The notes beneath the pieces were generated by a model, which saw only the letters and a program-made list of their open reading frames with translations, made no database searches and was not told where the DNA came from. The position numbers and the translations under genes are program-made. Below, piece by piece: positions 1,580 through 25,360 of a stretch of 64,000 nucleotides of DNA. The stretch spans positions 13,010,722 to 13,074,721 of the forward strand of contig OZ037766.1 in NCBI GenBank assembly GCA_964035545.1. Reading direction: 5' to 3'. Numbering within the stretch: position 1 is the stretch's first letter; every line of letters starts with the position of its first letter. The DNA is from Bugula neritina (Eukaryota > Animalia > Bryozoa).

Positions 1580-2387
1580 GTTTTCCTGTCAATGCAATAA
1601 GAAAAACAATGATAGCATAACAACAGACAATACAACATAGCATGCAAGTACAATAAGGAAATCTAAATACTCTTAGCCTCACCTGAAAAGTGTTGAGGCA
1701 TTAACCTTTTTATTTGTAGTTAATTGGAGCTAATTTATTAGCATTTTTGAATAACATATTTCATTATGTCAAAGACCATAAAATTGACTATCAGAAAATT
1801 TTCTGCAAACTAAATTTTGACTGATATTTACAGTCTGATATCCATGCTAATGACACACTTGAAGTATATAATAAATATTTTTTCAAACACAATATTATGT
1901 TCTTTCTATGACTGAAATCAAAGAGAAAAAAATGATGAATAGTCATGGTGACAAACAGCCATTGGTATTAAACTTGTATTTGAAACTTGACTACCACTTT
2001 ATTGATCCAGTTCGAAAACAAAAGAATTTAGGTACCTATATATAACTCTACTTTTTCTCCCTAGTTCTCTACAGCATTTACTTACCGTGTTACCAGATAA
2101 GGTCTTTTTCTGTGAAAGGTCACTCTTCTCTAATATTTTTCTTCATGGAGAGCATGCAGAAAGCATTGTGCTTCCAGAATTAAACCTATAAAGAAATAAT
2201 AACTCCGCCTTGCTTACTTTCATCAGCCAAAATCTTTTTGAACTTGCATCACTAAAATCTAGGAAAAAAATTACTGGATGACATTACTACACAAAATTAT
2301 AGAAAATTTGGCCTGCAATAGCATTCTATTTTGTCCTTGTGATGAGATGATTAACAACCAGTCAAACACAACTATGGTCACTAGATC

Positions 2388-2894
2388 AGTTTTATCCTAG
2401 ATGGACACTTCCCAGTTAGACGCTATTTTTTATTTTGGTGCAATTACATATAGTAACATACCTATATAAATGTTGCATTGATTACTAAATAGCTATAGCT
2501 TATAATAACTATCATAGCTAATATAAATTATCTGGAATAATATTCCAATTTTTATGGATATGTGTATGGAAAAAAGCAGTTATACATTAATAATAGATAT
2601 ATCATCTTCAATGAACACTTATTAACAAAATATCTTTTCAAACAACAAGAAGTATAGAAAATGCAAAATGAAGAAGTTAATGCAGATCAAAGGAATTTTT
2701 TATGTGCTAAATAACAAGCAATTGATCTAAGTTTATTTAAATCTATATAATTTATATATTTCAATAATATTTAAATAAAATGCACATAGAATATATATTG
2801 TACCAAAATAAATAAATAGTGTCTAACTGGGAAGCGTCCAAGTGGGAAATTTAGTCTAGCGTCTAATTGGGAAGTGTCCATCTGGGATGACACC
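2388..2894. mobile_element. Non-autonomous DNA transposon (Merlin-like MITE)
   Basis: ~37-bp TIRs: agttttatcctagatggacacttcccagttagacgct / agcgtctaattgggaagtgtccatctgggatgacacc. The 8-bp flanks actagatc and accagagc each differ by one base from the empty LINE site actagagc. GG..CC ends with an 8-bp TSD fit the Merlin superfamily. Confidence 0.75.
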
Positions 2895-3071
2895 ACCAGA
2901 GCTGAAGACAGTTGTTGTTGACATCAATATCTGCAAAGACGAGTGCTTACTGCTTACCACAAGTCACCACAGTTTTCTTCCTCAAACAATAAGAGATTTG
3001 AGAATAAATACTTTAAATAACAAATCAGGATAAGCTATGTGATGATTCACCATCATACCCACTGCAAGTGT

Positions 3072-3541
3072 GGTTTCATCCCACTTGGACGATTTTTTAA
3101 TTTTGGTACAATATATATAGTAATATACAAATATAACTGTTGCATTTACTGCTAACATGAAATAAGCTACCAAGCCAGCTATTTGCTTTAACTCCATACT
3201 AATTTAGCTAGAGTTTATTTTATTCAGAATAACAGATAACAGAATAAAATGCACAAATGCATTTCATGGTATATCACATACTGCTATATTACAACTTTTT
3301 CTTATTATATTTTGTCTATCTTTTACCGATAAGTTTAAGGTTTGTGCAAGATGGCTTCTTATAGAAGCATTGTTACTGTAAGTGGCTTACTGGTAGCTTC
3401 TTTGCTTTTTATTATGTGCTGAATAATAGCATAAAATACATATATTACACTAAAATCTATAAATATTGTCCAACTGGAAATCGTCTAACTGAGAAATATT
3501 GCAAATCTTCTCACTGGAAATCGTCTAAGTGGGATGACACC
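3072..3541. mobile_element. Non-autonomous DNA transposon (Merlin-like MITE), related family
   Basis: TIRs ggtttcatcccacttggacgattt / aaatcgtctaagtgggatgacacc, with a perfect 8-bp TSD gcaagtgt at 3064-3071 and 3542-3549. Confidence 0.85.
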
Positions 3542-3664
3542 GCAAGTGTAACCCACTGTTAAAGCTAATGTTATGAATGAGGCATTTAATTTTATGATTT
3601 CACTTAAAAAGTTTCATTTTGTAATAACTAGAAGTAAATGTTCTATCGAAACAGATTGAGTACT

Positions 3665-3998
3665 AAGACTTGTACATGTTAATGTTATTGCTATCATTAT
3701 GATTATCATTATGATTGTGGCTGCCAAAGATAAGTAAACTAAAAAAGTGTCATTTTCAGACTAAACATAAACTTTACCTTAAAGTTGAACTTGAACACAA
3801 TGATAATGTTAATCATAATGATAACGATAATCATAACTCGTAAGGATAAAGTTAAACTAAAACATCCTCATCAGACTTAGTCGTTATCCTATTTTTTATA
3901 AAATGGAACTATCATTATCACTATGATTAATATTATAAATATTGTAATTTATAATTATTAATAATAATAATATTATCATTATAATTATGATTATCAAT
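3665..3998. repeat. Degenerate hexamer-periodic (TNANWN)n tract
   Basis: Runs such as tcatta tgatta tcatta tgattg and tgataa tgttaa tcataa tgataa cgataa tcataa. Confidence 0.7.
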
Positions 3999-6900
3999 CA
4001 AATACTGAGAGAACAGGGTATTTGCTGCAGACTTGATGAGAGCAAAGAAATCCGAAATCAACAATTCCAGCTGAGGAAAGAAGTTAACAGGCTTAGAGAG
4101 GAAAATGCCTCTATGGCATATCGAGTGAGAGACATGCAGATGCAAGAAAAGCAAGCCTCGGGGGAATGGAAAGTGATGAAACAAGTCCAACAAAAGAAAG
4201 TGACGGAATGCTGAAAGTATTCCTTGCCAACACTAGATCTGTTAAAGGTAAAACCACTGAACTGCAATTTCTCACTACAGATTATGACATAATTTGTCTC
4301 ACTGAAACACGCCTAGATGACACAATACCTAATAGCAGTATTCTACCAATCAAGAACAAAACAGTATTTTGTCGTGATTCCAACATTTGTAGAAGTGGAG
4401 TTATGATGGCTGTGTGCGATATTTTAAATCCCAAACTAGTGGATCTTAGTGAGTATAGGGAAGAGGTGGTAGCAGTGAAAATTCAACCACGAATGGTCAT
4501 CTGCTGCTACTACAGACCTTATGTGCATCTCTCCAACACAGAGGTTATAAATGATATTTTGGATTACTTACAAAGAGAGTATCAGAGGCACACTATTTTG
4601 TTTGTTGGTGATATGAACTTTCCAGGGATTGACTGGAATACAGGAGCAGTAAAGCCCTTGACCCCATACAAAAGAATTCATCAGAATTTTCTTAATGTGC
4701 TAAATAGCCACAGAATGACTCAACTGGTAAAAGGATCAACACACCTTCTTGGTAATACACTGGACTTAATTTGCACCAATCAGCCAAACGTTATATGTGA
4801 CACTAAGATCATAAGCCCAGGTCTTAGTGATCATTCATTGATCATTGCTCATCTCCAAAGCGCAACCACCGCTACCCTGAGGAAACCACAAACTTTCAGG
4901 CTGTACAAGAAAGCCAATCAGTAAGCATTTCAGAAAGATATGCGAAAGACATCAGATGCATTAGCAGTTATGGAAGACCCAGAGGAAATGTGGAATCTCT
5001 TCACGGAAAACTTACAGAGAAATATTGAACAGCACGTCCCAATCAAAAAGCTGAAATCACCCCACCCCTCTGTCCCAGAATGGTTCAATAAACAAGCTAT
5101 GAAAATCAAAGAAAGCGTGCGGAAGGCACATAGGCGAACCAAAGTCAGCTCAAATAGCTTTGATCGTGAACAGTACAAAAAACTGAGATGAGACGGGAAG
5201 AAGGAGCTGGAAGCAATATGAAAAACCTTCTACACAAACAGAATATATTGTCCACTAAAAAGAGGGAACTCTAAGCCTTTCTTCAAACTGCTTAAAGCAG
5301 ACAAAAACAAACAAGAGCAATTGGTACTGAAGGACGAACAAAATATAGTGACCGGAGATCCTGTCCAATGCGCTGAGTTGTTGAACACTTTCTTCCAGAG
5401 TCAGTTCCAGCTGGGCTTCTTGGCAGAGGACTTCTTAAGGATCGAAACCGATGCCCAAGATTCTATTGATGTTACACCAAAAGGGGTTGCCAAACTAATC
5501 CAAAATTTGCCAAATGGAAAATCGCCAGGACCTGATGGAATTCGAAAGCCTGACTTGCTCATAGATTTGGAGGGTACTGCAAGATGTCTTGCTATGATCT
5601 ACAAAAGTTCCTTAAACACAGGTAGACTGCCATAACAGTAGAAACTTGCAAATGTCACACCAATACATAAAGGCGGGGACAGTGAATCTCCAAACAACTT
5701 TAGGCCCGTATCCCTGACAAGTATTCCTTGTAAAATGATGGAGCACATCGTGCTGCATCACCTCAATGAAAAGCTTGACAGTGTGCTTTATCATCGACAG
5801 CATGGTTTCAAGAGAGGACCGTCCTGCCAAACTCAACTGTGTGTTACCTACCACAACCTAGTAAAAGCAGCTGATGAGGGTCATACTACCCATGCAGTAG
5901 TTATGGATTTCAAAAAGGCTTTTGACAAGATACCTCACCTTATGTTACTCCAAAAATTGCAAGAGATATCGGGTATAAATGGATACATCCTTAACTGGAT
6001 ACTCGATTTTCTTTCCGACCGACAGCAGTCTGTTGTACTTAGAAGGGCAAGCTCAAAAGTGCCAAGTAACCTTAGGAGTGCCGCAGGGCTCTGTGCTAGG
6101 ACCAACTCTGTTTTTGTGCTATATAAATGATCTTCCGGATTTGTTGTCATGTAAAGTTAGCCTCTATGCTGATGACACCCTACTTTACCAAATTGTGAAC
6201 ACCATTAAGGATGCAGAACTATTCCAAACTAACAATAACGCTGTATATGAGTGGTCTATAATATGGAAAATGCCCTTCAATGAAAAGAAATGCCAAGCAA
6301 TTAATTTTGGTAAAGTAACCCCCATATCACACTACAAACTCGGTACCACATGCCTTGCGTGGGCAAAAAGCACTAAATACATTGGGGTAACCATCCAGTC
6401 AGACCTGAGATTTGATCAGTATATAAATAAGAAGTGTACCAAGTCCCGGAAAAGTCTTGGCGGTATCAAGCACTTGATGTATGATGCCCCAAAAGATGCT
6501 AAGCTATTGGCTTATACAAGTCTATGTAGGCCTATACTCGATTATGCAAATGTGGTTTGGGATCCTGCGGCTAGAAGTAAGGTGCATGATATAGAGCTGG
6601 TCCAGAACAGCGCCATACGGTTCATAAGCAATATGAGGTGAGGGATGAGTTAGGACTCCGGTCGCTGGAAGACAGACGAAAAAATCATCGACTGTGTTTA
6701 CTGACCCGAATTCTTCAAAATGAGGATCAACACCGATCTCTATCCAGAGTCTATGACGAGATTATTGAAGACAGGGAGCTTGTAACTGTAACCACTCGAG
6801 CGGCTGCCAGAGGAGAGCTTGTCTCTATATCATCTAGGAAAAACATATTCCACACTAGTTTTCTGCCACGAACAATTCGTGAAATTCGTGGAGAGTATGA

Positions 6901-7051
6901 TAACTAATTACAAAACGGCAAATGCTGCAACAAGTGCTAACCCTGGTCTAAGACTAAGTCTAATGTAAGTTGTAACTAGAGGCTTCCCTATAGACTCTCC
7001 AGTTGCTGCGGAAGTCCTACCTCAACTGAGGTAATAATAAACTGAGGTAAT
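3999..7051 (+). mobile_element. 5'-truncated, inactivated CR1/L2-group LINE (ORF1 tail, APE-RT ORF2 pseudogene 4166-6907, 3'UTR and tail)
   Basis: APE motifs LTET, GDMNFP and SDH; RT motifs QHGF, DFKKAFD, GVPQGSVLGP and YADD. In-frame stops at 4922, 5189, 5633 and 5639, a frameshift near 6045 and a deletion near 6635. Tail is actgaggtaat x2. Possible TSD tatcaat (3992-3998 / 7054-7060). Confidence 0.95.
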
Positions 7052-7183
7052 GATATCAATATGAATATGGATATTGTATCAAATTCAATAAATATAATAT
7101 TAATAAATTACAAATATAATATCATTATCATTATGATTATGATTCATGAATATGATCCTCGCAATTCAAAAGTTATAAACTAT

Positions 7184-10100
7184 CTCACTCTGTACTCACT
7201 CTGTGTCGATAGAACATTTAGATATCACAAAAATGTGTAAGTTAAATGCCTCGTTTATAACAGTGTGTTACAGTGGGTAGGCAGTGAATCAGCATATCAC
7301 TGATTTTTTAATTATTCATGAATATTTATTCTCAAATCCCGTATTGTTCGGGGAAGGAAGCTGTTGTGATAGACACTGGTCTTTGCAGATATTGATGTTA
7401 ACTGTCCTCTGCTCGCAGCTCTAGTGGTCATGGTTGTATTTAATCGGTTGTTGACGATCTCATCATAATTAGAAGATAAAGTATTATCGCTGGTTTCATT
7501 TTCTAGAATTTTGTGTAGTAATGTCATTCGATGGTTTCGTCTTCTGGATTCTAGTGGTGCCAGTTCAAGAAGATTTCTGGCTTCAGTGACACTTTCTCGT
7601 CCTTTAACAGTACTTATGAAGCGGACAGCCTTCCGTTGGACACTTTCTATGAATTCAATGGTCTGTTTACTGGTGGGATCCCATAGAGTGTCCCCATACT
7701 CCAGTACGGTCGACACAGGCTAGTGTATGCCAATAATCGGCTTTTGGTAGGTGCAGAATGTAGTGTGTATTTAATAGCCCCAAGAATGTTGGTTGCTTTG
7801 CTGGTTTTTTGAGCGATGTGTTGGTCAAACTTTAGATCTTGCTGGAGTGTGATACCAAGATAGCGAGTCTGGTCTGTCCAAGGTATGTCAGCATCACCTA
7901 GTTTATACGCGGGTGTTTGGCTTCTTTTGTTGAATGCTAATGCATGGCATTTGGATGCGTTAAATGGCATTTTCCATTTCTGCGACCATGCTTGTACAGC
8001 ATCAATGTTTTTTTGAAATTTTACCGATTCCTCGTAGCAGTTGACTTCCTGGTATAAGAGGGTATCATCTGCATAAAGGCTAACGTTACAAGTTACTACA
8101 TCTGGTAGATCGTTGATATATACAAGGAAGAGTGTAGGCCCTAAAACTGAACCTTGAGGTACTCCGGATGTCACATCGCACACACTCGACATTTGATTCT
8201 TTAGGACTACTCTCTGTTTTCGCCCTGTCAGAAAGTCTTGAATCCAGTTTAAAAGGGAGGGGTCTATATCAGGAATAGCTCTCAGTTTCTGCAGTAGCAA
8301 GCTATGTGGTACTTTGTCAAAAGCCTTTTTAAAGTCTAAGATAAGGGCATGTGTAATTTTGTTCTGTTCCATTGATTTAGCCAAATCATGGTAAGTGGCA
8401 CATAGTTGGGTCTCGCAGGACATACCTCTCCGGAACCCATGTTGCCGATGGTGAAGGAAGATATCCAGTTTTTTGTTGAGGTGATGAAGGACAATATGTT
8501 CAAGAATCTTACATGGTATTGATGTTAGGGAAATAGGCCTGTAATTGAACACTTGGTTAGCCTCTCCTCCTTTGTGAATTGGGGTCACATTTGCCAGTTT
8601 CCATTGGTCAGACAATCGGCCATATTTTATGGAGGCTCGATATATGTGGCTGAGACACTCAGCGGTGGTATGTATATCTATCATGAGGTCTGGTTTCCGG
8701 ATCCCATCCGGTCCTGGAGACTTACCATTTCCTAGTGAGATAATCAGCTTAGCAACACCATCTTCCGATATCTCTATTTTTTCATCAGGAGACTCCAATG
8801 GCGGGATACCATCAATACAGTGATCTTGACAAAATTGCTGCTGAAAGAAATTGTTCAACATGTTTGCACACTCACTGGGGTCATCCGAGGATTGGCCGTT
8901 TGTTTGGAGGCTCATTGGTGGAGGACACTGCATTCTTGTGTTTCTCAGGTGACGGTAGAAGGGCTTCGAGTTTCCTCGTGCGAGTGGGCCACATATTTTA
9001 TCCACAAGGAAATTAGTTTTCATCCGCCGAACCTCTTTTTTGGTCGTCCTCCGCTCTTGCTTATATTTTTTTAGGAAAAAGGAATCCCCAGTTTGTTTAT
9101 ATTTCTTATATGTTCTTCTTTGTTTAGAGACAAGTTTTTCAGCTGCTTTACCAAACCACTCAGGTTGACTGGTCTTTTTGCGATTAAGCTCTTTTGTAGG
9201 AACACAATCCTCTATGTTTGCCTGTAGTTGACTGGTGAAGAACAACCACATTTTGTTTGGATCCTCCATCCCTGCCAAGTTTTCACTGAGTTTCTGCATA
9301 CGCTCACAAAAGGTCTCTTCATCAGCCTCTTTGTATCGTTTCACAATGAATTTAGTGCTAGCTTTGTGCCGCTGGACCACAGGCTTTAATGTGCAACTTA
9401 CAATGTAGTGATCACTTAAGCCAGGTTGAATGATGTCAGTATCCAAGACGTAGCCATGTGTATTAATGCAGATGAGGTCTAATGTGTTTCCCTTGACATG
9501 AGTTGGCTCCAAAACCATCTGGCTCAGCATAAATTCATCCAGGATATTGATAAACTCCCTGTGAATGTGCTTGTGTTGGCATTCAGGTTTCACTAGTTTT
9601 TGTTTCCAATCAATACCTGGGAGGTTGAAGTCCCCAGTCAGGATCAGCACATGGCTAGGGAATTTGCTTGTTATGTTCTCAAGGATGGTGTGTAGTTTGT
9701 TCATATTCCTTAGGTGTACATAAGGTCTATAGAGACAGCAGATGATGGTTTGCGGTTCCATTGCTACAACTAATACTTCCTCTTTGAGGTCGTCAATGTT
9801 TATTTTCATTGGTTTCAGGTCACGATCCAAGGCAAGTAGTACTCCTCCTCCATGTAGGGTTCTGTCTCTTCTAAATACTTTCTTGCTTGGGTCTTCAATG
9901 ATGCAACAGTCCGGAACTGTTTCATCTAAGTGGGTTTCAGTTAAGCAGATAATGTTATATTTATTTGTTAAGGCAGTTATTTCAGCAGTTTTGCCTTTGG
10001 CTGATCTAGTATTTGCGAGAAAAAGTTTTAGCATGTTGTCTCCTTTGTTTGAATGAGAGCAGGGTTCAGCGGGCGCCATTCCCCCGATTGGAGTCGCTCT

Positions 10101-10262
10101 TCCATCCCAACTCTGGTTTCCCGGGTTCTGATGCGGTACTGTCTGTTTGCATTTGCGTCATCTTCTTTAAGTCTGCGAATTTGATCACGAAGTTGAAATT
10201 CTTTATCGCGCATCTCTTTACTGGTATCAAGCTTACAGAAAACTCCTGTAGTCCTTGTATCC
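7184..10262 (-). mobile_element. 5'-truncated CR1/L2-group LINE with near-intact ORF2 (10079-7312, one frameshift near 7705)
   Basis: An 810-aa ORF with APE and RT (YADD) continues in the 7312-7716 ORF to SFLPRTIRD. ORF1 tail GVFCKLDTSKE..QSGEWRP is present. Tail is acagagtgag x2. Confidence 0.95.
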
Positions 10263-10369
10263 TATCAATATGAATAATAAAAATATGATATCAATCATCC
10301 AAGGATCACGATTGCTTTATAATTATTTCCTAATTGAGAAAAAATTAATATTTTAGTTTAGTGGAAGGT

Positions 10370-10900
10370 AACCGACTAACTGGGTACAGTCAAAGAGTTA
10401 AGTTCAACAGTCAAAGGGTTAATACTAACAGATCACGCCGTTCTCCGAAACACTAACTTTAATCTGATTCCTGCTGAAACGAGTTGGCGGTCACTCATTG
10501 AATTGGTTGGGCGGGCTCGAGTTTGGTGTTGGGACTTGGTGTTCGGACCATCGAACTCAATAATATTCCAGCTCAGTGGTTCGGACAATAATATCTATAC
10601 AAATCTGCACACATTCATACCAGCTAGGTGCTGGTTTTAGCGTTATTTAATTTATCCAATTTGGGACCCCTCAGAGACCACCATCGTTGTGCTGCTTCAA
10701 GCTATTTTAAAAAACCTCAAGCTGAATAATTATAATATTAAAGCCTCTGCAAGGTGAAGGGCAACATAAATCTCGCGTTTACATTTATTATTATTGCCCT
10801 TGTCGAAAGTTCAACAGCCGTGGATAGAGTAGTGACAACTGCCCCTAAATCATGATTCAATACTTGGCTCAGTACACAGTTTTAGCTGTATGCCCAAGTA
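10370..10900. promoter_or_regulatory. Probable bidirectional promoter and first non-coding exons of C5orf63-like (-) and NAT9 (+)
   Basis: Local CpG/GC enrichment; attgg (CCAAT) and gggcgg (GC box) at ~10502-10515. Candidate donors: minus-strand gttagt at 10380 and plus-strand gtaaat at 10898. The region lies between divergent genes. Confidence 0.5.
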
Positions 10901-10959
10901 AATGAAATAGCAATAAATTTTCATCATTTATAGCAGTTATCTGCTTTAGCTTATCACCA

Positions 10960-11830
10960 ACTTCAAGTGATCACTATAAGTATAAGTATAAACCATTACT
11001 GATTACCATGTCATACTGAATCTGATAATCATAGTGATACTCAGTCTCATACTGATACTGATGCCGATGGGCTCAGGCTGTGATAGTGATGCTCGTAAGC
11101 TTTTCATTTTAGTTTTAAACATTAAGTTTAAGTGATTGTCATTATAATAATCAAATTGCGATTATGACTATCATTATCATAAAGTGATTATCTTTACGAC
11201 TATTACTATTACTATTAGTAATAGTATTACTATTAGTATAAGTATTAGTATTAATATTATCATTGATGATTGAATTTGATTATTGTGTTTATTACTAATA
11301 CTAATAGTAATACTATTAGTATTAGTATTACTACAGTATTAGTTATAACTTCAAGTCTAATATTACTATTACTAATAGTAATACTAATAGTAATAGACAT
11401 ACTGATAGTAAAATACTAACATAAACAGTAATACCTAATAATCATAATGATGCTAATAGTAATACTAATAGTTATACCCATAGGCCATAGGCATAGTGTC
11501 AGATTCAAATTACACTTAATAATATGTCTTATTATTATTACTATTAGTCTTAGACAGTTAAACTCAATGTTATTACTTACAGTTATAGATATTACTCTCA
11601 CTAAAAGTAAATTAAAATTGCTAAAGCATAGAGGTATTATTATTAGTATTACTATTAGTATTATTATAACTTTGTAAGTAAAGCTAAAACCAAGAATGGT
11701 AGCTAAATAACTAATTTACTAAGTTAAAGTTATTTAGTAAGAGTAAGCATTACAGATTACTATTGGTATTAGTATTACATTTAATGATTTATTTAGTTAC
11801 TAACTAATACTACTAGTATTAGTATTAGTA
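10960..11830. repeat. Degenerate hexamer-periodic (TNANWN)n tract in NAT9 5' intron
   Basis: tgatac tcagtc tcatac tgatac tgatgc; taatac taatag taatac; ttagta ttagta ttacta. Confidence 0.8.
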
Positions 11831-12685
11831 GTATTACTTTAATTAATATGATTCTTGCTTTAGTTTATACAATAGCATAAACTGAAAAAAGTTTTGTGGA
11901 AATCCTTGACACTCACAGTGACACCTATTATCACTCAAGACGGTTTTGTTATTTGATGTTTGGGTACACTGTGCTGTGCATCTGGGTATTGGCAATTAGT
12001 TTATTGGTAATCGTCAGCTATTTCAATGTTATGTTTCTCAAGCTTAAAGGTGTTATAAAAGTTTATAAAGCAGCTCTCGTAGATATGAGGATGTGTTGCT
12101 CTACAGTTTACAGTCAGTAATTCTTTAGCGTAGCTCTGTTGCAATAGTCTGAAGAAGCAGCACTGAAGGCAAATATGGTGTTTGCAGCTAAAGTTTCGGT
12201 TTTGTTATCCTTATTCTTTGCCAGCCAAACTTGTTCAATATGCCCTTATAGGGGCATATTGAGCTTTTTTTTTATAGAAAAATAGTACCAGTGTACCCCA
12301 TGCTTGTCTGTTTTCTTGTCTAAGTGCGATTTTTATTATTCTGCTTTTGACAATTGAGTTAATAAAAATACTGTGCCGATGAGCGCAATTCATAAATCAA
12401 GTCAAATTTCTGTGGATATAGAAAAATGGTTAATTTAAAAATAACTATATGATCACAGTTGCACATATTATTCTTTTTGCATTTGAATTATTGCCGATGC
12501 AATCTTGTGTTTCGCATAGAAGCCAAGGTTTAAGTTAAAATTAGTAGATGGCAGAGCTTGTGTACTTAAACTATTATACAAGGTATTTTCACCTCTTTGA
12601 TTTTGGCAAGTTTATTAAAAAGGTACCTAGTTAGACTTGCTACATTGACTACTGCATTTACAGTGAGCTGGTTGATGAAAAAGCA

Positions 12686-15153
12686 ATGAAGACAAATGAG
12701 AATCAAGCAATTTGCTTGCCAAGATGTATTCTTGTTCCCTATCATGAAAAGCATGTTTTAAAGTAAGTTTGTAAGTTGATCATTTGCATAATGTAGACAA
12801 TATTTTTTTCATTCATTTCCAATTTTTTTTCCTATAGATACAACCATGCCATGAGTTATTTGGATTACATACTTTTTGAGATAGGGTTTTAACTTGTTTT
12901 GTTATTAGAAAATGTAGTAATTTTTTGATAATGTTCTATGTAGATATCATGAATGGATGAAGTCAGAAGAACTGCAAGTATTGACTGCATCTGAGCCATT
13001 GAGTTTAGAAGAGGAATATCAAATGCAAATTTCTTGGTATGAGGATGATAAAAGTGAGCCATTGGCTATTTGTATTTTAGAAAGCTGAATTCATTAAACG
13101 ACAAAGCTAATCTTAAGTTTTATAATGTAGAGAAACAATTTATTGTATCAGTTAGCACTTTATTCTTAATATTTGAATATGTGTGGAAATTCCCATATAT
13201 AGCAATTTATTTACCACCCATTTTATTCTGTTATTATAGAATAAGTTTCATGTAAATTATTAACACGAGTTGATCTAGCTATGCGATAGCTGATATACTG
13301 AAATCTTGATTGGAGCAATTGAAGCTAGAACCGTAAATCTTTTGCAAAGTTCAATAGCATTTTTAATTACTTAAATTTATATGTAGTCTTTAGTAATAAA
13401 AACAGTTTGTCCTATAGCTTTATATTGATCTGAGCACTAATTGAAGCTATTTAATTTAAGGCCGTCTCCTAAAATCATTGACTTTATGTGCTCAAGTAAT
13501 TGACTACTTAACTTGCAAAGATTGATTCATTTATTGTATATATTATAAGTTAAAGAAACAAATATTGAAATGGTGCTCTTTCGGCTACCGAAATGGCAAA
13601 TCATTTGCTTTGTGTCTAGATTATATTGTCTTTAATGATTCACTTTTTAAACCAAAGTTTGACTTGACATATTTTTTACAAAGCTTAAATATTTATAAAA
13701 GCAATATGTTTAAAGTTTATATATGCCATTTTACTTTTGATAGATATTAGTGGTTACATCTACTCTTGAACTTTGAATGTCTGATGTAGAGTGTACATTC
13801 ATAATTTTGGATAAAGATTTAATCAAAGCCTCTCCTGAAGACGAAATACGTGCTATGGTTGGGGACGTTAACTTGTTTTTTAATGACTTAGACAACATTC
13901 ATTGTGCAGAGCTGGAAATTATGGTAGCAGGTAATACTAACCTACATGTTTATACTAAAAATTAGAATAGCTTGCAAATAATAAAACATTAGAATGTTGT
14001 TAAAAGTATGCAGCTGGCCTCAAAGTCAACAACATTCTAATATTTAAAACTGGATTAAAAGCAATGAAATTAGGAGTTGTCTATTCTTCTACAGTAAATT
14101 TGGGCTACATTTAAAAATTAATTTTAGAAATGGGTGCACGTGGTAAAGGAATTGGAAAACAAGCTACTTTAGCTATGATGAATTACGGAGTTTTGACTCT
14201 CGGAGTGGACACATTTATTGTGAAGATCGGTTATCAAAATACCCCTAGTATTGAACTTTTTAAAAAGTTAGGGTTTCAAGAGGCATGTATTATAATTATC
14301 ACAAGTTTAACAATTGTTGTGAGAATAAAATTCATTTGCATAAATCTTATTTTTCTGAATTATTTTATTTACCTGAAAAGGCATTTGTACTTAAGAGATG
14401 ACTAGAGATATTTTGCAAAAACTTCTGATATGTAAAAAAGAACATGGGATAATAATTCTGCGGATCTCTGCATCATCAGCACAACTGCTCATACTTCATC
14501 AAGCACATGCTTCTAGCATTCCTCAACAATAATAAGAAGTATCAACGTCCTATTTGGAACAGCTGGCATGCTTTTAGTTAAATTGATCTTTGCTACTACC
14601 TGCATCCTGCAACGTTTTCTCTATATTTCTGGCTGGAGTGCTTTAATCTATAATGAGCATTCTTCAGCCTTATGTTTATATTATACGGTAGTTGATCAAC
14701 ACTTGTTTTTATGTTGTATGTGCACAAACTGCTCCTCTGAACTAAGTGGGAACAACTCCCATATCAATTCATTTTTCTCTATGTGAAGCTGAAGAATTGA
14801 AAACATTTTTCTATCATCTTTTCTAATTGATATATCTTGCTGGGTTTTACAATCAGAGATATGTCAATACAGCTGATTCTAGGGCTCTAGTTTGTAAGCG
14901 TTGTAGTTGTATCAATTTGCTGTAATCCTACTGCAGGTTATAAGAGCTAAAACAATGTGGAAGCTAATTACATTTATAATTTGCCTAATGAACCTATTAC
15001 CATCTGATGTTGCAGATCAGCAGAAGTGAAGCATTCCAAGAGATAACATTTCAGCTATCAATCACAGAAGATAAAAAACTTGATATACAGTCATCTCTGG
15101 AAGAGTACAGTGTCTGTGAATATAGTAGTTTGCAGTCAGTTGTATGTAAATAA
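12686..15153 (+). CDS. NAT9: N-acetyltransferase 9 (GNAT); exons 12686-12762, 12944-13053, 13790-13930, 14128-14282, 15016-15153
   Basis: [99 protein letters not shown]. Splice phases are consistent. Confidence 0.93.
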
Positions 15154-16206: not shown

Positions 16207-19200
16207 TCAATATCCTGAAGACTCCAAGTCACTTGCAATAGGAAATGGCGTATATTGACAATCTGTGTCTTCCTCATCAGTGGTAACATGATTCACGAGA
16301 TGTGACAGCGCATCATTTATGGCATCAGCTGCATGAAACAACTCTTGAAACTGGCGTTTAGTTCTACTATTGTAGCCGGATGATGAAGTTGAGGAAACTG
16401 AATGCTGAGGTGTAAGTTTAGGTGATGCATTCACAGAGCCACTAGAATGAAGCCTTTCACGTTTAGGAGTAAATGGTGATTTATATTGCTTCTGAATGGA
16501 ATTATTAGGATGATACAGGGGTGATGAGTGCACTAGTCCATTAGAATTGTCTCTGGACTTTAGCAAACCCATTAATCTTTCTAGCTGATCCATTAAATCT
16601 TTGCGCCCATCTTGGAGTTTGTTCATTCGCCCCTCAAGTTCACCTTTATGTTGTTTAAGCATTTGTAACTCAAAAATCAAATTGGAGTTTCCGTAAGAAG
16701 CATCTTCTGCTTGCTTCAAATGACTGATTTGTTCCATTATTTGTCTATTACTCGCTTCTAACTCATCAATTAAATTTTGATGCACTTTAAATTCTGCACA
16801 CTGCTGTAAGGAGTCTATGCTGCCCTCACAAGAACTATTGCCATTCACAAGATCCACCTCACATAGTTTACCTTCATAACTAAACAATTTGGCAGCATAC
16901 CTTGCAATAAGATTATGCTCATCATCAATTCGAGGGGCTTCCATGATTTCACACTACAATTTAACAGTACCACATCACTTCACAAGGGTCATTTCCAGCT
17001 TACTGCAATGAAAAATATATTGAACATATAATCAAGACTGTTGTACTATCCTATATACTTGAGCAGTTAAAAAACTAACAAGAAGCAAAAAAATGTTTCA
17101 TAGCACAACTTAATAAAAGGTGCTGAGTTGCTTCAATCCAATTGAATGCCTGAATATTAGATATGAAACTACATTTATCATATTCCTTACAGCTAAAATT
17201 TTGCATAAAAGTTGTGAAATAGAGCAAGCAATATTGAGATTTCTTATCTAGTTTTAAACAGTTGACACATCAAAATTGAAAAAAACAGGCTTATCAATAG
17301 AGCGATTAGATCAACAGCTAATAACCTACAGTATTCCTGTTTACTAATCATTAGAGAAACTTAGGAGGAACCTTAAAACAGTTGTTCTTATCTATAACAT
17401 GATTGACCAAAAGGGAGTAGCTATGATCTAGCGATAAGAGTGCTGGCCTAGTTTGATACACATGCTAAATCATGAGCTCAAGGCCATTGACAACGTCATT
17501 TCGGGCACCCAGTTATAATGACCCCTGTGGTACAAGCAAAGCTCTCAAACATTGTTGCCAGCATAGTGAGAGGCACAGCCCTTGTGCCACTTGAAAAATC
17601 TTAGCAACAGAGGTTTACAGGGATGGAGACTTTAAACAGAACTGAATAAATCCTAACTTCATTATTATACCATTTTTTTACATCAACTGAAAAAAAAATA
17701 ACTGGTGTTGTCAAACTATTCTAGTTTCCTAAGGCTACAGTAAACAACACAAAAACAACTTGATATAATTTCAAAAAATGAAATATTCATTAGTGTATAT
17801 TATAATATTATTATGTTACGATCAACTTTTCTGCTGAACTCATAGTATGTTCAAAATTTTTAGCAAGATAATGCAACTGAAGTGGTAGTATACCGATTGA
17901 GGCAAAATATGACCTAATTAATGAAAATATCGTATTTTTGTATGTGTATGAGACCATCCATCGGTATACTACCACTTCAATTGCATTATCTTGCTAGAAA
18001 TTTTGAACATTTCAGTGAAGCTAATAAACACCGAATGAGAATAGCAAGGAATATACTTGTAGTTAAGGCTAGTATGATTAAATGTATTTATATAAATTAA
18101 ACTGTTAATTAAACTGAAATATTGGTCATGTGTACATTTGGCGTATAAATTTTGAGCACGAAATCTGCAAAGGGATAGTATCTAAAATTGACATACTTTT
18201 TCATATGAAATTTTAATGGTAAATTTCTTTAGGTAGCAGAAGGTATTTTAGATGCTTTCCTGTTTTTATCGCTATCTTTTAAAAACTTTTTACATATCAA
18301 GCTGCTCATTATTTTCACATGATTTTAATTTTTTTACTGCTCATGCTGATACATGAGTGCCCTGATTCTCTCATTTAGTATTTTATGTCTTTTTGCTTTA
18401 ATTGTTACACTTTTTGGTCAAACACAACCTTTGCACAGTTGCTACACTACACCTGAATTTACAAATGTATTGTTGATCATTTTGACAAATAATTGTTATA
18501 CTGATAGACCTTCAAGTATCAAAATGTAAAGCAAACGCGTTCTGCAAGTTCATTCTCTGAAATCTGATTATATAATCTTATTCAGCAAAATAAAAGATAA
18601 AAAGCATAGGTTTTAAAATCAAACCATTTATAAAGTCTCAATCACCCAATAATATTCTACATTATTACACAAATTATATTTATCGCACTAAGTTACAATC
18701 AGATATCAGCAGGAGCTTTCTACCTCAAAACTGATACAATTATATTTGGCGAACTAATTCTAGGCTCCAAAGACTGAGCCGTCGATTACATCTGTTTATT
18801 GTTTTTTGCTCGCACAGTTTTCATAATACCAGAAGCTTATGTCAAAAAGATTTGCTTTGCATTTGTTCAAGATTGTTTCCACTACAAATTTTATTATCCA
18901 TATTACATCTAAAAGACAAATAAAGCAGTTACATCTCTTTTGATACTGAAAATTAGCTATATTGCCTGCCCATACTACACGTAATTTCCAACATGCAAGT
19001 CTAAAGATTTTCAACTTTTCCTAACTAATTCCATTGTTCAAATAATCAAAACAGCAACGCTAACTGCATGAAAGAGATTGAAAAGACAAAAATATGTATA
19101 ACAAAACTAAATTCTACTAGCTCTACCACAAGCATAATATTGTGCAAATTGCTTTGCTGCATTTCGAATTTTGGATTGACAATTCAGATTCTTATATATA

Positions 19201-20335
19201 ATTATATGCCTATGGGAATGGTAATCAGACATTATCATTATGATTATCATTTATTACTAGATAAAAATCATTACTATAAACATGATTATAACTATTAACT
19301 ATAAATCATTAATTTTCATTATGATTATAATAAGTAATACTTATAGTATAAGTTATACTAATAGTAATAGTTATAGACACAGTGATAGCTACTGATAGTG
19401 TTATACTGATAAACCATTATAATAATCTTAGTTATAGCATTGGTAGAAGTTAGAGTTTTAGTTATAATTATAGTTATACTTTAAGTTTAAGGTCTTGAGT
19501 TCAACTTAAACTTATAAGTTATACTTATACTTAAACTTTAAGTTAGGCTAATCTTATACTTATAGCAACTTATACTAATACTTAACAGCTAAAAGTTAAA
19601 GTTAATTCTATACTTAATCTTATAGTTAATGATAACGTAATCATAATGTTAATCACTTCAAGTTATTGTTAATGTTATACTTATGTTATAGTTATATTCC
19701 TAGTCATATTCATATACTATAAGTACACCTGGGGCTAGTCCTATGAGTCATACTGTATGAGTATCAGTAGGCCTATGTCAGTATGTGCTGTAGTAATATT
19801 AATACACTACAGTAAATATATATTAAATTAAAATATTTAGTCATAATCAGATACTATTACTATTAGGAATACTAATAGTAATACTAATAGTAATACAGTA
19901 TTAGTATTAGTATTATTACTATTACTATTAGTAATACTAATACTATACTAAATCTAATACTAGTAGTAACACTAACTGTAAGAGTATTACTATTAGTATT
20001 AGTATTACTATTAGTATTACTATTAAGTATTAGTATAAGTATTACTATTAGTATCATATTTAGATTCACAATTATAATATTTAACGCTATTTAAAATCGT
20101 TGGTGTAATTAGAAATAGTTGAATACTGAAGTTGTTAGTGCTCGGTAGTGAGTGGATTCATTTAGTACGCAGGCTTTTGATTGTTTTGAAGTTTACACTC
20201 AGTGTGAGTATGAGTTAGCACCTGCCACTTTCGATTGGTTACAGCATCAGCATGTTCAATGAAAGGCTTCGTTTCCTCAGAGTTATCCCGTTTAAGTCGC
20301 CGTGTACACTGGTTAAGATACAGCGATTCCAACAT
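16207..20335 (-). CDS. Dystrobrevin C-terminal-like coiled-coil protein; main exon 16953-16207, putative first coding exon 20335-20222
   Basis: DDEHNLIARYAAKL, ELEASNRQIMEQI, ELQMLKQHKGELEGRMNKLQDGRKDLMDQLERLMGLLK and ELFHAADAINDALSHLV match dystrobrevin C-terminal motifs. There is an acceptor at 16954. The upstream exon joins in phase 0 but is less certain. Confidence 0.75.
17413..17620 (+). mobile_element. Possible degenerate tRNA-derived SINE
   Basis: A-box-like tgatctagcgataaga and B-box-like gagctcaaggcc sit in a GC-richer island. The evidence is weak. Confidence 0.25.
17847..18010. repeat. Inverted repeat / MITE-like foldback (~50-bp arms, ~65-bp spacer)
   Basis: atgttcaaaatttttagcaagataatgcaactgaagtggtagtataccgat ... 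atcggtatactaccacttcaattgcattatcttgctagaaattttgaacat. Confidence 0.85.
19200..20075. repeat. Degenerate hexamer-periodic (TNANWN)n tract in first intron of the dystrobrevin-like gene
   Basis: ttatac ttatac ttaaac; ttaatc ttatag ttaatg; taatac taatag taatac; ttagta ttacta ttagta. Confidence 0.8.
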
Positions 20336-20520
20336 GTTTATTTTTCTTCGTGTTGGAAAATTACTTCTATGCGTTAGTGACACGTACGTAGTAAACAAGC
20401 AAGACTAAGTATATCAATATGGTTATATAATAACTATCAGTTTCCTAAAGTCTAATTAGTACTGTCAGTTTGATTAAACCTTAATTGTGTTGTTTGCAAT
20501 AAATAACTCTAAGCCGTAAG
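20336..20520. promoter_or_regulatory. Probable bidirectional promoter of dystrobrevin-like (-) and DERL1 (+)
   Basis: CpG-containing island between divergent genes. Candidate DERL1 non-coding exon-1 donor gtaagc at 20516; acceptor at 26411 just before the ATG. Confidence 0.45.
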
Positions 20521-20559
20521 CGAGATTTAATTGAGTTTGACTATCTTATTCTTTATGGA

Positions 20560-20700
20560 CCATCACACTGAATCTGATCACAGTGTGAGTGACAGACTGA
20601 GACACTGACAGTCACAGTGACACTCGCACACTCACAGTGACACTGAGTTTGACAGTGACTGTGAGTGATCACTCATCACTGATCAGTAATGATTGATTGA
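20560..20700. repeat. (TNANWN)n tract, left flank of full-length LINE
   Basis: tgacag ac tgagac ac tgacag tcacag tgacac; tcacag tgacac tgagtt tgacag tgactg tgagtg. Confidence 0.75.
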
Positions 20701-21103
20701 TTTCCGGTTTCGATAATGGAGAACGCCAAATTTTAAACTTTCAAACAATTTAACGTAATTTCAAAATTAGGTCGCTTATAGTAATACTAGTAGAGGCAGG
20801 GGTGTGCTCATTAATTTTTACTCAAACCCTAGTCTATTGTGAGTCAGTAATAAACACAGAATTTAGTACCCATCGAAGAGATTCAACCTGAACTTCCGAC
20901 TGACTATCAGTATCACTCCATTATAAATTTTTAGTGCCGCCTAGTTGATAGTATATATTTTTAGTTAGTAAACGCAGTAGTACTATTAGTAATACTGTAT
21001 TAATAGTAGATGTAATACTAATATATATTTTTTTATAACGATAATCACTTATCATATTGACAACTACCAGTAGTTGCATAAAAGTAATTTAATAAATAAA
21101 GGA

Positions 21104-22049
21104 ATGCCATCTAAGAGCAAAGATAAGTGCGCCTATTGCAACCTGAAGGCTGATGAGCAAAAATGTCATGTGATGATACGCTGTGATTGCTGTGAGGCAT
21201 GGTATCACAGCCAATGTCAGGACCTCACCAAATATGAGGCAAATCTCATCTCTAGCGCAGAAGGGAAAGGAGTAAGATGGTTCTGCACTAAATGCATACC
21301 GGAACTGGTAATTAATGCAGACTCTCAAGACCAAACTAAAGCTAAAACTTCAATTACCGAACTAAAAGAAAAGCTGGAAGAAATGAATCTGTTAACAATG
21401 AACAAACTTAACGATATTGACCGAGCTGTTAAAGGCATGCAACTCACGTATGCTGATACACTAAAGAGTAACAATGAGAACATAAAGTCCCTAGAAGATC
21501 AATGTTCCAAGCTTGTTGAGCAAAGTACGGTGCAAATGAATAAGGCTGTTGAAGTAAACATAAATGCTGAGAAGTTGATGCAGAAAAGTAATGAAATAAG
21601 TGAGGCAGATGCCAGAAAATGTAATGCTATTCTATATGGTGTGCCGGAGGGAGATGAAATACCGGTACTAGAGCAGGTCGAAAAATTCATGAGAGAAGAA
21701 AGATTCAAAAACCTTGACAAACCTCATGCAGCCTTAAGACTCGGGAAAAAAAAGTGCGGAAACCGCTAGACCCATAAAAGTTGTCTTTGAGACTATCCAA
21801 TCTAAATGGGCCTTCATAAAGAGGGTGAACTCTTGGGGACTTAAAGGTGACAAAGTCTTCTGCAAGCTAGATGCCAGCAAGGAAATCCGCAACCAAGAGT
21901 TCGCCCTCCGTGAGTGTGTGCGTGGACTGAAAAGTGACAACCCTGGATCTGCATACAGAATAAGGAATCTGCAAATTGAATGTCAGCAACCCTCGGGGGA
22001 ATGGAAGCGTCTGACGCCGGCATTAAACAGTGTAGTGAGAGCCCACTAG
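21104..22049 (+). CDS. LINE ORF1p (PHD finger, coiled coil, C-terminal domain), split by one extra A in the A8 run at 21746-21753
   Basis: CAYC..CDCCEAWYHSQC..WFCTKC is a PHD finger, followed by NAILYGVPE and RLGKK. Removing one A restores RLGKKSAETARPIKVVF..VFCKLDASKEIR..SGEWKR. Confidence 0.88.
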
Positions 22050-24766
22050 CCTTATTTTTGGCAAACTCCAGGTCTGTTAAGGGGAAAACGGCCGAAGTTC
22101 AATTCATTACATCTGAATATGATATAGTTTGTTTAGTAGAAACACATATTGATGACACTATAAACAACTGTGACATTCTCTCTAGCCAAAGCAAGACCAT
22201 ATTTAGATGGGATCGTAATATTCATGGTGGCGGGGTCCTTATAGCAGCAGCGAATTCGCTTCAGCCAACTAAAGTTGAACTAGACACTTTGGGCGAAGAA
22301 ATGGTTGTAGTACAGATCAAACATAGCATTATAATATGCTGCTACTATAGACCAAACATATCAATGCTAAACATGGCAGCTTTGAGAAATGTCATTGAAC
22401 ACATCACCAACAAATACCATCATCATTCCATCATTCTTGTTGGTGACTTTAACCTTCCTGAAATAGACTGGGAAACCAGAAAACTAAAATATGGTGCAAA
22501 ATTCAAGTCTGTACACTTGGACTTTCTCACCATGTTATTTGAAAACAGGATGCAACAACTTGTTACGCAACCCACTCATATTCACGGTAATATCCTGGAT
22601 TTAATCTGTACCAATAACACAGCGTTAGTCACAGATATTGATATAATATCTCCGGGTCTCAGTGATCACTACATCGTCACTGCAGTGCTTACCTGCCATA
22701 GACCAAATCTCTTAAAAACACAACCGAAAACAATTAAACTATACAAAAATGCAAATATAACTGGTTTCAGAGACAGTATGCAAACTGTCTGTAACAAACT
22801 TAAGGACATGTCAGACCCGGACAACATGTGGCTCCTTTTTAGAGAAGGTCTTGCGCAGGCTTGCAAAGATCACATTCCTACAAAAGTTTTAAAATCAAAA
22901 AACTCTCGCTGGCCTGTTTGGTTTGATAAGGAGGCAAAGAAGCTTGCTCAAAAGCAAAGAAAAACTTGGTTTAAGTATAAAAAAACAAGGGATGTGTTTT
23001 TCTTGGAGAAGTATAAAACAGAGCGAAAATCTTGCAAAAAATTGCTTCGTCACAAAAAGAGGAACTATGTAGTTGAGAAGGTATGTAAACCATTAGAGAG
23101 GGGAAATTCCAAGCCTTTTTTCAAACACCTGAGGCAAAAAACTGGTCAAGATAATATTTCCATGTCTCTTACTGACCCTGATACTAATCAACTAACTGAC
23201 AACTCACTGAGATGCGCTGAAATCCTGAACAGTTATTTTTATAGTCAGTTCTGCCAAGATCACCAGGTGTCACAATATCCAAATTATAGCAGTGATACTC
23301 ATAACATATGCATATCCATCAAGGGGCTTGAGTCACTTATTAGAGGATTGGCAAATGGTAAATCACCGGGGCCAGACGGCATAAGAAAACCAGACCTATT
23401 AGTTGATACTGAAATAAATGCCACTTGTCTTCAGCACATATACCATGCCTCACTTAAATCTGGAAAACTACCAAGAGATTGGAAACTTGCTAATGTAACC
23501 CCAATACATAAAGGAGGAAGCAAGGAATCACCACAGAATTATAGGCCTATCTCTCTCACAAGCATTCCGTGCAAAATGCTTGAGCACATAATCCTGCACT
23601 ACCTGAATGCAACCCTTGACAATATACTTCACAACAGGCAGCATGGTTTTCGGAAGGGAATGTCATGCGATACTCAGCTGTGCTCAACATACCATGACAT
23701 TGCCAAAGCGCACGACCAATCACAAGACACACATGCAATTGTTCTAGACTTTAAACAAGCATTTGACAAAGTCCCCCATTCCCTACTGCTACTGAAACTA
23801 CGTCGCATTCCAGAAGTTAACCCACAGATTATAAATTGGATTCAAGATTTCATCACCAACAGAAAACAGAGAGTTGTAATTAAAGGCTCATGCTCAACTG
23901 AGCTCCCAGTAACATCGGGCGTCCCCCAAGGATCTGTACTAGGACCCACACTATTCTTGGTTTATATTAACGATTTACCAAGTTGTGTCAATTGTTGTGT
24001 CAGTCTTTATGCAGATGACACCCTGTTGTACCAAAGAGTAAACTCAGAAGCAGATGCTGCAGACTTCCAGGTCAATATCGATGCAGTATATAACTGGTCC
24101 CAACAGTGGAAGATGCCTTTTAATGAAAGTAAATGCCATGCTATATCATTTGGTCGCCAAACAAGCCTTCCATCTTATAAGCTTGGGAGTACACCTGTCC
24201 AATGGACTGAAGAGACCAAGTATCTCGGTGTGACCATGCAGAGTAATCTAAAATTTGACCAACACATTGTGCTGAAATCACAAAAAGCTAGCAGAGTCCT
24301 AGGAGCAATCAAGTTTGCTCTCCATGATGCTCCAAAAAATGGCAAACTCTTGGCTTACACCAGCCTCTGCCGTCCATTGTTGGAGTATGCAGATACCCTC
24401 TGGGATCCTTATTTAAAAACCACCATACATAATATAGAAATGGTTCAGAATCGTGCTGTGAGGTTCATATCAGGTCTCAAGGGGCGAGAGAGTGTTAGTG
24501 ACGCTCGATGCGAACTGGGTCTACTACCATTGCAAACGAGGCGTAAAAATCATAGGCTCACACTATTGACACGTATTCTACAGTCTGAAGCCACGCACAG
24601 TACACTTTCATCAGACTATGATGAGGTTGTGGAAAATCGCTCTCTCATGTCCGTAGCTACGAGATCAGCAACCCAAGGTTTACCCAACTCCATTTCTTCT
24701 CACTCTAGCTGTTACCACCAAAGTTTCTTACCAAGAACGATACGCGACATGAGAGGATTTACCTAG
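22001..24766 (+). CDS. LINE ORF2p: AP-like endonuclease and reverse transcriptase, intact
   Basis: Uninterrupted ORF with LVETH, GDFNLP, SDH, NYRPISLTS, QHGF, DFKQAFDKV, GVPQGSVLGP, YADD, YLGV and SFLPRTIRD. The ATG at 22001 is conserved in the other copies. Confidence 0.97.
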   Translation: MEASDAGIKQCSESPLALFLANSRSVKGKTAEVQFITSEYDIVCLVETHIDDTINNCDILSSQSKTIFRWDRNIHGGGVLIAAANSLQPTKVELDTLGEEMVVVQIKHSIIICCYYRPNISMLNMAALRNVIEHITNKYHHHSIILVGDFNLPEIDWETRKLKYGAKFKSVHLDFLTMLFENRMQQLVTQPTHIHGNILDLICTNNTALVTDIDIISPGLSDHYIVTAVLTCHRPNLLKTQPKTIKLYKNANITGFRDSMQTVCNKLKDMSDPDNMWLLFREGLAQACKDHIPTKVLKSKNSRWPVWFDKEAKKLAQKQRKTWFKYKKTRDVFFLEKYKTERKSCKKLLRHKKRNYVVEKVCKPLERGNSKPFFKHLRQKTGQDNISMSLTDPDTNQLTDNSLRCAEILNSYFYSQFCQDHQVSQYPNYSSDTHNICISIKGLESLIRGLANGKSPGPDGIRKPDLLVDTEINATCLQHIYHASLKSGKLPRDWKLANVTPIHKGGSKESPQNYRPISLTSIPCKMLEHIILHYLNATLDNILHNRQHGFRKGMSCDTQLCSTYHDIAKAHDQSQDTHAIVLDFKQAFDKVPHSLLLLKLRRIPEVNPQIINWIQDFITNRKQRVVIKGSCSTELPVTSGVPQGSVLGPTLFLVYINDLPSCVNCCVSLYADDTLLYQRVNSEADAADFQVNIDAVYNWSQQWKMPFNESKCHAISFGRQTSLPSYKLGSTPVQWTEETKYLGVTMQSNLKFDQHIVLKSQKASRVLGAIKFALHDAPKNGKLLAYTSLCRPLLEYADTLWDPYLKTTIHNIEMVQNRAVRFISGLKGRESVSDARCELGLLPLQTRRKNHRLTLLTRILQSEATHSTLSSDYDEVVENRSLMSVATRSATQGLPNSISSHSSCYHQSFLPRTIRDMRGFT

Positions 24767-24940
24767 CTTACCTATCAATTTTCTTTTTAAATATCACTAT
24801 CTAAATTGAATAATATCAGCGGTAATGCGGAAGCACTAAAAAAAAAAACGGAACACTCACTGTCACACACATGAGGCGCTCTACTAACGTCATATGATGG
24901 TCAAGAGCGTTCTACCTCATCAGAGGTAATCAGAGGTAAT

Positions 24941-25360
24941 TATCATGCGTCACCGCGACTGAGTCTGATGACTGATACTGATAGTCATCACTCATCTAGT
25001 ATCGGTATCAGTATCACTCATGAGTCATAACTGAGTTCAAGTCTTGAGAGTTATGACTTAGTCTTATGAGTTATGAGACTGAGTTAGACTTAGAATATAA
25101 CTATAAGTATCAGTATAATCATTGTGTTTTTCATTATGATTATGTTTATGACGTTGATCAAGATCATAGTTATTAAATTTAATTATTGTTGATGTTAATA
25201 ATTATAATAAATATAATAATATTAGTAATTTTTACTATTAGTAATACTAATACAAATAGTAATACTAATAGTTGTACTTATACTTATAGTAAAACTGAAT
25301 ACTTATTCTCATAGTCATAGTAGCCTAACTCACTTAGTCAGTCATATCTGGTAATACGCA
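24941..25360. repeat. (TNANWN)n tract, right flank of LINE, DERL1 5' intron
   Basis: tgagtc tga tgac tgatac tgatag; tgagac tgag ttagac ttagaa; taatac taatac aaatag taatac taatag. Confidence 0.78.

Follow-up and report, generated by a model that had tools for sequence, protein, structure and literature searches.

The 3' untranslated regions (UTRs) of CR1 and L2 long interspersed nuclear elements (LINEs) close with a hairpin and then a short tail of tandem repeats, and lack poly(A) (PMC4316615). A PHD finger, functionally unstudied in these elements, is widespread in the first open reading frame (ORF1) of both lineages, which are generally regarded as relaxed in target choice (PMC4120745). Other LINEs are microsatellite-specific, as Kojima and colleagues described for Togen, which targets (TG)n, and for some HERO families (PMC4640811). 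Here we analyzed LINE copies that lie in or beside six-base-periodic (hexamer) tracts in a 64-kb stretch of the Bugula neritina genome (G000:C2:13010722-13074721; hereafter the window), which belongs to an assembly of 216 Mb with approximately 31% GC. The family is named CR1/L2-type from its architecture: ORF2 encodes an AP-type endonuclease (APE) and a reverse transcriptase (RT), ORF1 is of the PHD type, and the 3' end consists of a hairpin and a tandem tail. The association of these LINEs with the tracts is real and LINE-specific, graded among subfamilies and strongest in young copies. It is found genome-wide and is not a local coincidence.

LINEs in the window were identified by ORF scans, Pfam and tblastn, which revealed three copies with APE and RT and one remnant. 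Copy 1 (3999-7055, plus strand) is 5'-truncated inside ORF1, and its ORF2 is broken over several frames. Copy 2 (7184-10262, minus strand) has its 5' end within ORF1, at the equivalent of position 2567 in the LINE locus L018; its ORF2 runs for 810 aa before a frameshift, and a 5-bp target duplication, CTATC, is possible. Copy 3 (20702-24939, plus strand) is full length, with its 5' end set by two further full-length copies. It encodes a 231-aa ORF1 with a probable PHD finger (21074-21769) and a 928-aa ORF2 (21980-24766) matching the Pfam domains RVT_1 (E=1.2e-39) and Exo_endo_phos_2 (E=5e-13), the same two as in the L018 ORF2; the endonuclease is N-terminal and the RT central. The remnant (2222-3663, plus strand) retains an ORF2 C-terminal residue and a copy-2-like 3' UTR, and its tail continues into a tract at 3645-4018. 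A tract-positive 60-nt window lies within 120 nt of six of the seven LINE junctions, while tracts make up only about 5% of the window; the claim of the first-pass annotation that the copies lie in or beside tracts is therefore confirmed. Only the 5' flank of copy 2 (10263-10322) departs from this, with just a short period-6-like piece ahead of a CpG-rich segment. When the directly adjoining 60 nt are scored, two of the seven junctions are tract-positive. The annotation had found no LINE in the remaining ~40 kb, and tblastn likewise found no other ORF2 fragment there. The ORF2 segments of the other window copies share 46-62% amino-acid identity with the copy 3 ORF2. As had been claimed, the copies thus belong to diverged subfamilies and represent independent insertion events. 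The four elements share about three distinct tract sites, and the window by itself is therefore suggestive but not decisive.

LINE junctions and hexamer tracts across the genome

A search of the genome with the ORF2 C-terminus gave 1,338 candidates, of which 132 were scored as matches. Seventeen copy-3-like and three copy-2-like loci were read over 10 kb each, together with approximately 3.1 kb around each of 27 copy-2-like 3' ends. Removal of duplicates and of the window's own copies left 42 independent 3' junctions, in addition to pattern counts. A 60-nt flank was scored as tract-positive when four or more of its ACT/AGT triplets shared a hexamer phase or when its lag-6 excess reached at least 0.25, a state found in 5.3% of the non-LINE window sequence. 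On this criterion, 14 of 26 copy-2-like 3' flanks (binomial p=8e-12) and 4 of 16 copy-3-like 3' flanks (p=0.009) are positive, and tract positivity, 0.43 at the junction itself, drops to about 0.1 past 480 nt. A stricter motif test required three phased ACT/AGT or TCA/TGA triplets starting no more than 30 nt from the element end. For this test, tails of the form CTACCTCANNNGAGGTAA, of which the genome contains 77, were also used, the listed matches being sorted by hand into copy-1-like and copy-3-like. The strict test is positive for 11 of 26 copy-2-like junctions (42%), 16 of 42 copy-1-like tails (38%) and 4 of 26 copy-3-like tails (15%).

The ends of a hAT-like miniature inverted-repeat transposable element (MITE) served as a control. 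Among its 226 terminal inverted repeat (TIR) ends, eight carry the ACT/AGT motif and four the TCA/TGA motif, giving 10 distinct positive ends (4.4%), and random window positions are positive at 3.9%. All three LINE subfamilies exceed the MITE in Fisher tests, with p=6.9e-8 for copy-2-like junctions (ACT/AGT motif, MITE 8/226), p=1.5e-8 for copy-1-like tails (either motif) and p=0.044 for copy-3-like tails (either motif). LINEs therefore land in tracts 4 to 10 times above chance or an unrelated transposon. The control transposons comprise this one family; a second was sought in the LINE-locus DNA that was read, where none was repeated often enough. GC-matched sampling predicts 1.4 copy-2-like flanks with phased triplets against the 11 observed, and none of 200,000 simulations reached 11; AT-richness alone is rejected as the cause by this null. 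Runs of six phased ACT/AGT triplets number 49,008 genome-wide (227 per Mb), and the window holds 12 of them (188 per Mb); this similar density makes the window background representative. A segmental duplication of a LINE together with its flank was considered and rejected, as the LINE flanks resemble one another at only 68-84% and in many registers, which is typical of tracts; the insertions are accordingly independent. The genome-wide flank comparison with random sites and other transposable elements that had been proposed as a check on the window pattern thus yielded tract enrichment against random positions, the GC-matched null and one MITE family.

The age of the copies bears on whether the pattern arises at insertion or afterwards. 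Nine of the 17 copy-2-like copies with at least 95% UTR identity are positive in the strict test, and six of the eight most similar copies are tract-associated. If insertion were random and copies outside the tracts were purged from a compact genome, with survivors left in a safe harbour, the small genome size (216 Mb), the resemblance of tracts to non-coding spacer DNA and the occurrence of older copies in tracts would all be accounted for. Such an origin by selection only is nevertheless improbable, since the youngest copies are the most associated, the still-polymorphic copy 3 already lies in a tract and the MITE ends remain at the null rate. Sites less than 1 kb from promoters are also not obviously safer than intergenic DNA.

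The evidence that copy 3 is polymorphic is a contig of one public run, which links position 20693 directly to 24939 and omits the LINE and 8 nt. The depth of this contig is 66, compared with a local depth of about 134 and with 67.7 for heterozygous single-nucleotide polymorphism alleles. The joint has just 24 nt on its shorter side, and the assembly's own sample may be the source of the run; however, the joint coincides with both LINE ends and looks like a segregating empty allele with a continuous phased tract. The expectation that removing a LINE restores a continuous tract is borne out at this joint, and the presence of the tract in the empty allele indicates that the tract is older than the LINE. 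Relative to this contig, the filled allele carries eight extra nucleotides, TGATTGAT, at its 5' junction (20694-20701), which look like a slipped copy of the adjoining ATGAT; no clear target duplication is visible at the copy 3 junctions (20694-20701/24939). Further tract-to-tract joints in the same run, with sides of 21-23 nt, were taken as repeat cross-matches and not as alleles. Where both LINE ends were found, tract frequently flanks both sides. L005 has the target duplication CTGTTA and L022 one of about TACTAGTAGTA, each with tract on both sides; L020 and L035 likewise show tract on both sides and short target duplications, and L042 is a 62-nt LINE fragment within a long tract.

These data also bear on the reverse relationship, in which LINEs would create or extend the tracts by repeated nicking, abortive reverse transcription or tail expansion. 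LINE tails do merge into tracts, and GC-richer tract variants in the window (20576-20675, 44530-44609 and 62001-62116) look like the GAGTGAG tail. Yet 49,008 six-triplet motifs stand against approximately 1,300 LINE candidates, most window tracts contain no LINE, tract is present on the LINE 5' side as well, and the tail units repeat every 10-16 nt and not every 6 nt. Together with an empty allele that is already tract, the tail periods and the excess of tracts over LINEs rule out this idea, which the first-pass annotation had offered as its alternative and to which we assign a negligible probability.

Proposed tail annealing, tract phase and a possible chromatin tether

None of the window copies ends in poly(A); their 3' ends consist of one to three short tandem units. 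The copy 1 tail (7024-7055) is AACTGAGGTAATAATA x2, the copy 2 tail (7184-7204) is ACAGAGTGAGT x2 and the copy 3 tail (24920-24939) is TCAGAGGTAA x2. Across the subfamilies the units are TCAGAGGTAA, ACAGAGTGAGT and ACTGAGGTAATAA(T), again one to three units long. A hairpin precedes the tail at an equal position in all three subfamilies, with differing stem sequences; in copy 3 it spans 24875-24911 and is followed by a second, small hairpin at 24913-24928. Folding energies of the hairpins alone are not significant in the three subfamilies (z = -1.9, +0.6 and -1.1). In copy-3-like 3' UTRs (L001-L017), an internal A-run located about 75-100 nt past the ORF2 stop varies from about 8 to 23 nt between copies and is sometimes interrupted.

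The tails end at variable points, namely GAGTGAG, GAGTGAGTA, GAGTGAGTAC, GGTAAT or GGTAATAAACT, and tract units follow directly. The tail periods (10-16 nt) differ from the target period (6 nt), and the tail ends nonetheless resemble tract units. Enrichment of tail 5-mers in tracts, expressed as log2, is +0.66 for copy-2-like, -0.12 for copy-1-like and -0.49 for copy-3-like whole tails, and +1.69, +0.89 and -0.40, respectively, for the last 8 nt. The subfamily ranking for tail enrichment is the same as that for junction adjacency. The distance, modulo 6, between the last GGT of the tail and the first ACT/AGT in phase was determined at 15 junctions; it takes the values 0, 1, 2, 3 and 4, none of them dominant, and the copy-2-like junctions are likewise spread over phase.

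The best explanation, which we consider moderately probable, is preferential target-primed insertion into pre-existing tract DNA, helped by annealing between tail and target. In this mechanism, the CR1/L2-type LINEs would integrate by target-primed reverse transcription and favour six-base-periodic, AT-rich tracts with phased ACT/AGT or, less often, TCA/TGA triplets. The preference would act at integration and be largely local. Tract DNA, rich in TA steps, would be nicked by the endonuclease, and the tract strand so exposed would anneal to the terminal bases of the LINE RNA tail. The tail ends ...GAGTA(C) or ...GGTAAT(AA) would be suited to this by their resemblance to the tract units TAGTAA and AGTAAT, and such annealing may form the subfamily-specific component of the preference. 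Reverse transcription would therefore begin at variable tail points and in no fixed hexamer phase.

Several observations weigh against this explanation. The sample of 42 junctions is small, and between 45% and 85% of the copies are not directly in a tract. A fixed hexamer phase or a nick-site motif was sought at the junctions, and none was found. The match between tails and adjacency extends over three subfamilies only and is suggestive. Over the eight 60-nt bins nearest the junction (to 480 nt), the tract positivity of copy-3-like copies is 0.19-0.44 in five bins and 0.12 in three, so that these copies are oftener near tracts than in them, and a regional cue fits them better.

Such a cue could be a regional tether: the PHD finger of ORF1 would recognize H3K4me3 on the nucleosomes that first follow a promoter, where the tracts would lie, and insertion would be independent of sequence. 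The PHD-type ORF1 has 71 genomic matches and, in all subfamilies checked, precedes the matches to the ORF2 C-terminus by approximately 2.7-3.4 kb; L018 is without it merely through 5' truncation. The closest solved PHD fingers (phmmer E=9e-7, with full Cys4-His-Cys3 spacing) are those of Pps, BPTF, CFP1, DIDO1, PHF2/8, TAF3 and MLL1, all of which are H3K4me3 readers, and the Trp of the xWYH motif is kept in the LINE finger. Its Pfam PHD score is 22.2 bits, however, under the 24-bit cut-off, and PMC4120745 records no functional study of LINE PHD domains. Tract positivity is raised over approximately 0.5 kb around the junctions, including those of copy-3-like copies not directly in tracts. CpG-rich 200-nt windows, used as a proxy for promoters, occur within 1.4 kb of the 3' junction in 18 of 42 flanks against a window background of 14.7%, or in 15 of 42 after three flanks beside other LINE coding sequence are set aside, but this is not significant against far flanks at the same loci (6/19). 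The subfamilies, moreover, all have a PHD-type ORF1, yet their tract adjacency differs nearly threefold (42% and 38% vs 15%). This ORF1 is upstream in every subfamily checked, so that none of them offers a PHD-free contrast. Overall, we regard a sequence-independent tether as rather unlikely. A two-layer homing process, in which the PHD finger tethers the complex to H3K4me3 nucleosomes behind promoters while the subfamily tails have drifted to mimic tract units and set the precision of landing, is a similarly doubtful proposal and, if anything, slightly more so. If true, it would constitute a chromatin-plus-microhomology system, and the CR1/L2-type LINE family that uses it would have co-evolved with a class of sequence particular to this genome.

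DNA structure was considered as another cue, since tracts that mix ACT and AGT offer many hairpin or cruciform apexes for structure-specific insertion. One locus fits this well: in L006 (G000:C1:35113919-35123918), a 5'-truncated copy-3-like LINE (3435-5677) has perfect inverted copies of its flank on its two sides and thus occupies the middle of a palindrome. In 30 reconstructed target sites, by comparison, junction-bridging base pairs average 6.7 against a background of 6.4 (Mann-Whitney p=0.68). Palindrome or hairpin-apex targeting is on this basis rejected as a general rule despite L006, and we judge the structural alternative very improbable.

Tracts, promoter-like segments and other features of the window

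The tract map of the window was obtained from the lag-6 autocorrelation, and period-6 tracts account for 4.95% of the sequence. The tract at 3645-4018, of the ATCATT/ATGATT kind, extends from the 3' end of the remnant to the 5' end of copy 1 and gives lag-6 excesses of 0.48 and 0.36 in these two flanks. A short tract piece at 7056-7183 (mask 7078-7156) separates the 3' ends of copies 1 and 2. The tracts adjoining these two copies and the remnant belong to the ATCATT/ATGATT kind and not to the ACT/AGT kind. Two tracts of ACT/AGT hexamers, at 11002-11870 and 19305-20092, have no LINE inside. Copy 3 is flanked on its 5' side by a GC-richer, phased tract (20576-20701; mask 20576-20675) and on its 3' side by a tract at 24940-25666 (mask 25072-25666), in which a GC-richer phased part is followed by the TACTAA type. 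A few further tracts were mapped, and most tracts of the window are without a LINE. The GC-richer variants at 20576-20675, 44530-44609 and 62001-62116 consist of GAGTGAG/CAGTGAC units, which resemble the copy-2-like tail, and are rich in GTGAGT words resembling 5' splice sites.

Two CpG-rich segments are candidate promoters by CpG content only. The first, at 10300-10700, reaches 11 CpG per 200 nt, and the second, at 20151-20450, lies between two tract regions. Both (10.3-10.7 kb and 20.15-20.45 kb) have a tract on either side, an arrangement like that of a bidirectional promoter. Pieces of host genes comprise a GNAT acetyltransferase exon identified by Pfam (14130-14290, plus strand) and a coiled-coil exon with no Pfam match (16207-16944, minus strand). 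An ORF at 27586-27972 (plus strand) looks Derlin-like, and one of 407 aa at 38137-39360 (minus strand) resembles a seven-transmembrane receptor, both by eye only.

Two hAT-like MITEs, recognized by their TIR pairs at 2389-2893 and 3069-3544, split the LINE remnant. This MITE is approximately 0.5 kb long, its TIRs end in ...GTCYANNTGGGATGAMACC, and 8 bp (GCAAGTGT) are duplicated at the second copy. Among the LINEs themselves, three independent copies from two subfamilies have 5' starts that nearly coincide inside ORF1 (window positions 10262 and 3999, and L019:2978; equivalent to L018:2567-2588). This shared start could reflect a 5'-truncation hotspot or an internal start yielding ORF2-only copies. 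At the locus L016 (G000:C1:12951426-12961425), the 5' flank of the LINE resembles the pol gene of another retroelement. An ORF1 at 6342-6940 of the same locus has a PHD region only 25-36% identical to that of copy 3, a divergence that indicates a further LINE family nested nearby.

Comparison with known targeted and untargeted elements

The closest described elements are the CR1/L2 LINEs of the Jockey superfamily, including chicken CR1, in which an octamer microsatellite tail follows the 3' hairpin. The family described here is like them in its APE and RT ORF2, its probable PHD ORF1 and its 3' end, and heavy 5' truncation is common to both. It differs in that 38-42% of the 3' junctions in two subfamilies lie directly in one degenerate, six-base-periodic tract class.

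Besides the families named above, Waldo, Mino, Kibi, Koshi and Dong are also microsatellite-specific LINEs. All these elements share with the present family the use of a multicopy simple-sequence target, and their 3' ends match the target repeat; in the present family the tail ends resemble tract units, and two of the three subfamilies have tail k-mers enriched in tracts. Microsatellite-specific LINEs almost always use one exact repeat, which they enter at a set position of its unit, and many of them either carry an endonuclease of the restriction-like type or fall in other APE clades. In contrast, the LINEs analyzed here occupy a degenerate phased tract partially (15-42%) and with no fixed phase. 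Occupancy falls short of the near-total use of one target repeat, with 42%, 38% and 15% by subfamily and at most 54% on the 60-nt criterion. Owing to this partial occupancy and unfixed position, the family lacks strict target specificity. The targeted family proposed in the first-pass annotation therefore stands with respect to the genome-wide tract association and the independence of the events, but a preference takes the place of strict site specificity.

This subfamily-graded preference provides a natural system for separating the roles of the endonuclease, of tail-target annealing and of a chromatin reader such as the ORF1 PHD finger. The tracts tolerate 4-kb insertions, one of which is still segregating, and this tolerance limits the function that they may have beside promoters.

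Yeast Ty1/Ty3 and the Dictyostelium TRE elements use a promoter-proximal safe harbour near genes transcribed by RNA polymerase III, which they reach through a protein-protein tether to transcription factors; for the present LINEs a tether is a proposal. The likeness to these elements would be that insertions lie in a narrow zone by transcription starts and so avoid coding sequence, with CpG-rich segments taken here as the sign of promoter proximity. Taken together, these CR1/L2-type LINEs have a strong preference, be it regional or for sequence, in which the known theme of repeat targeting appears in a new form.

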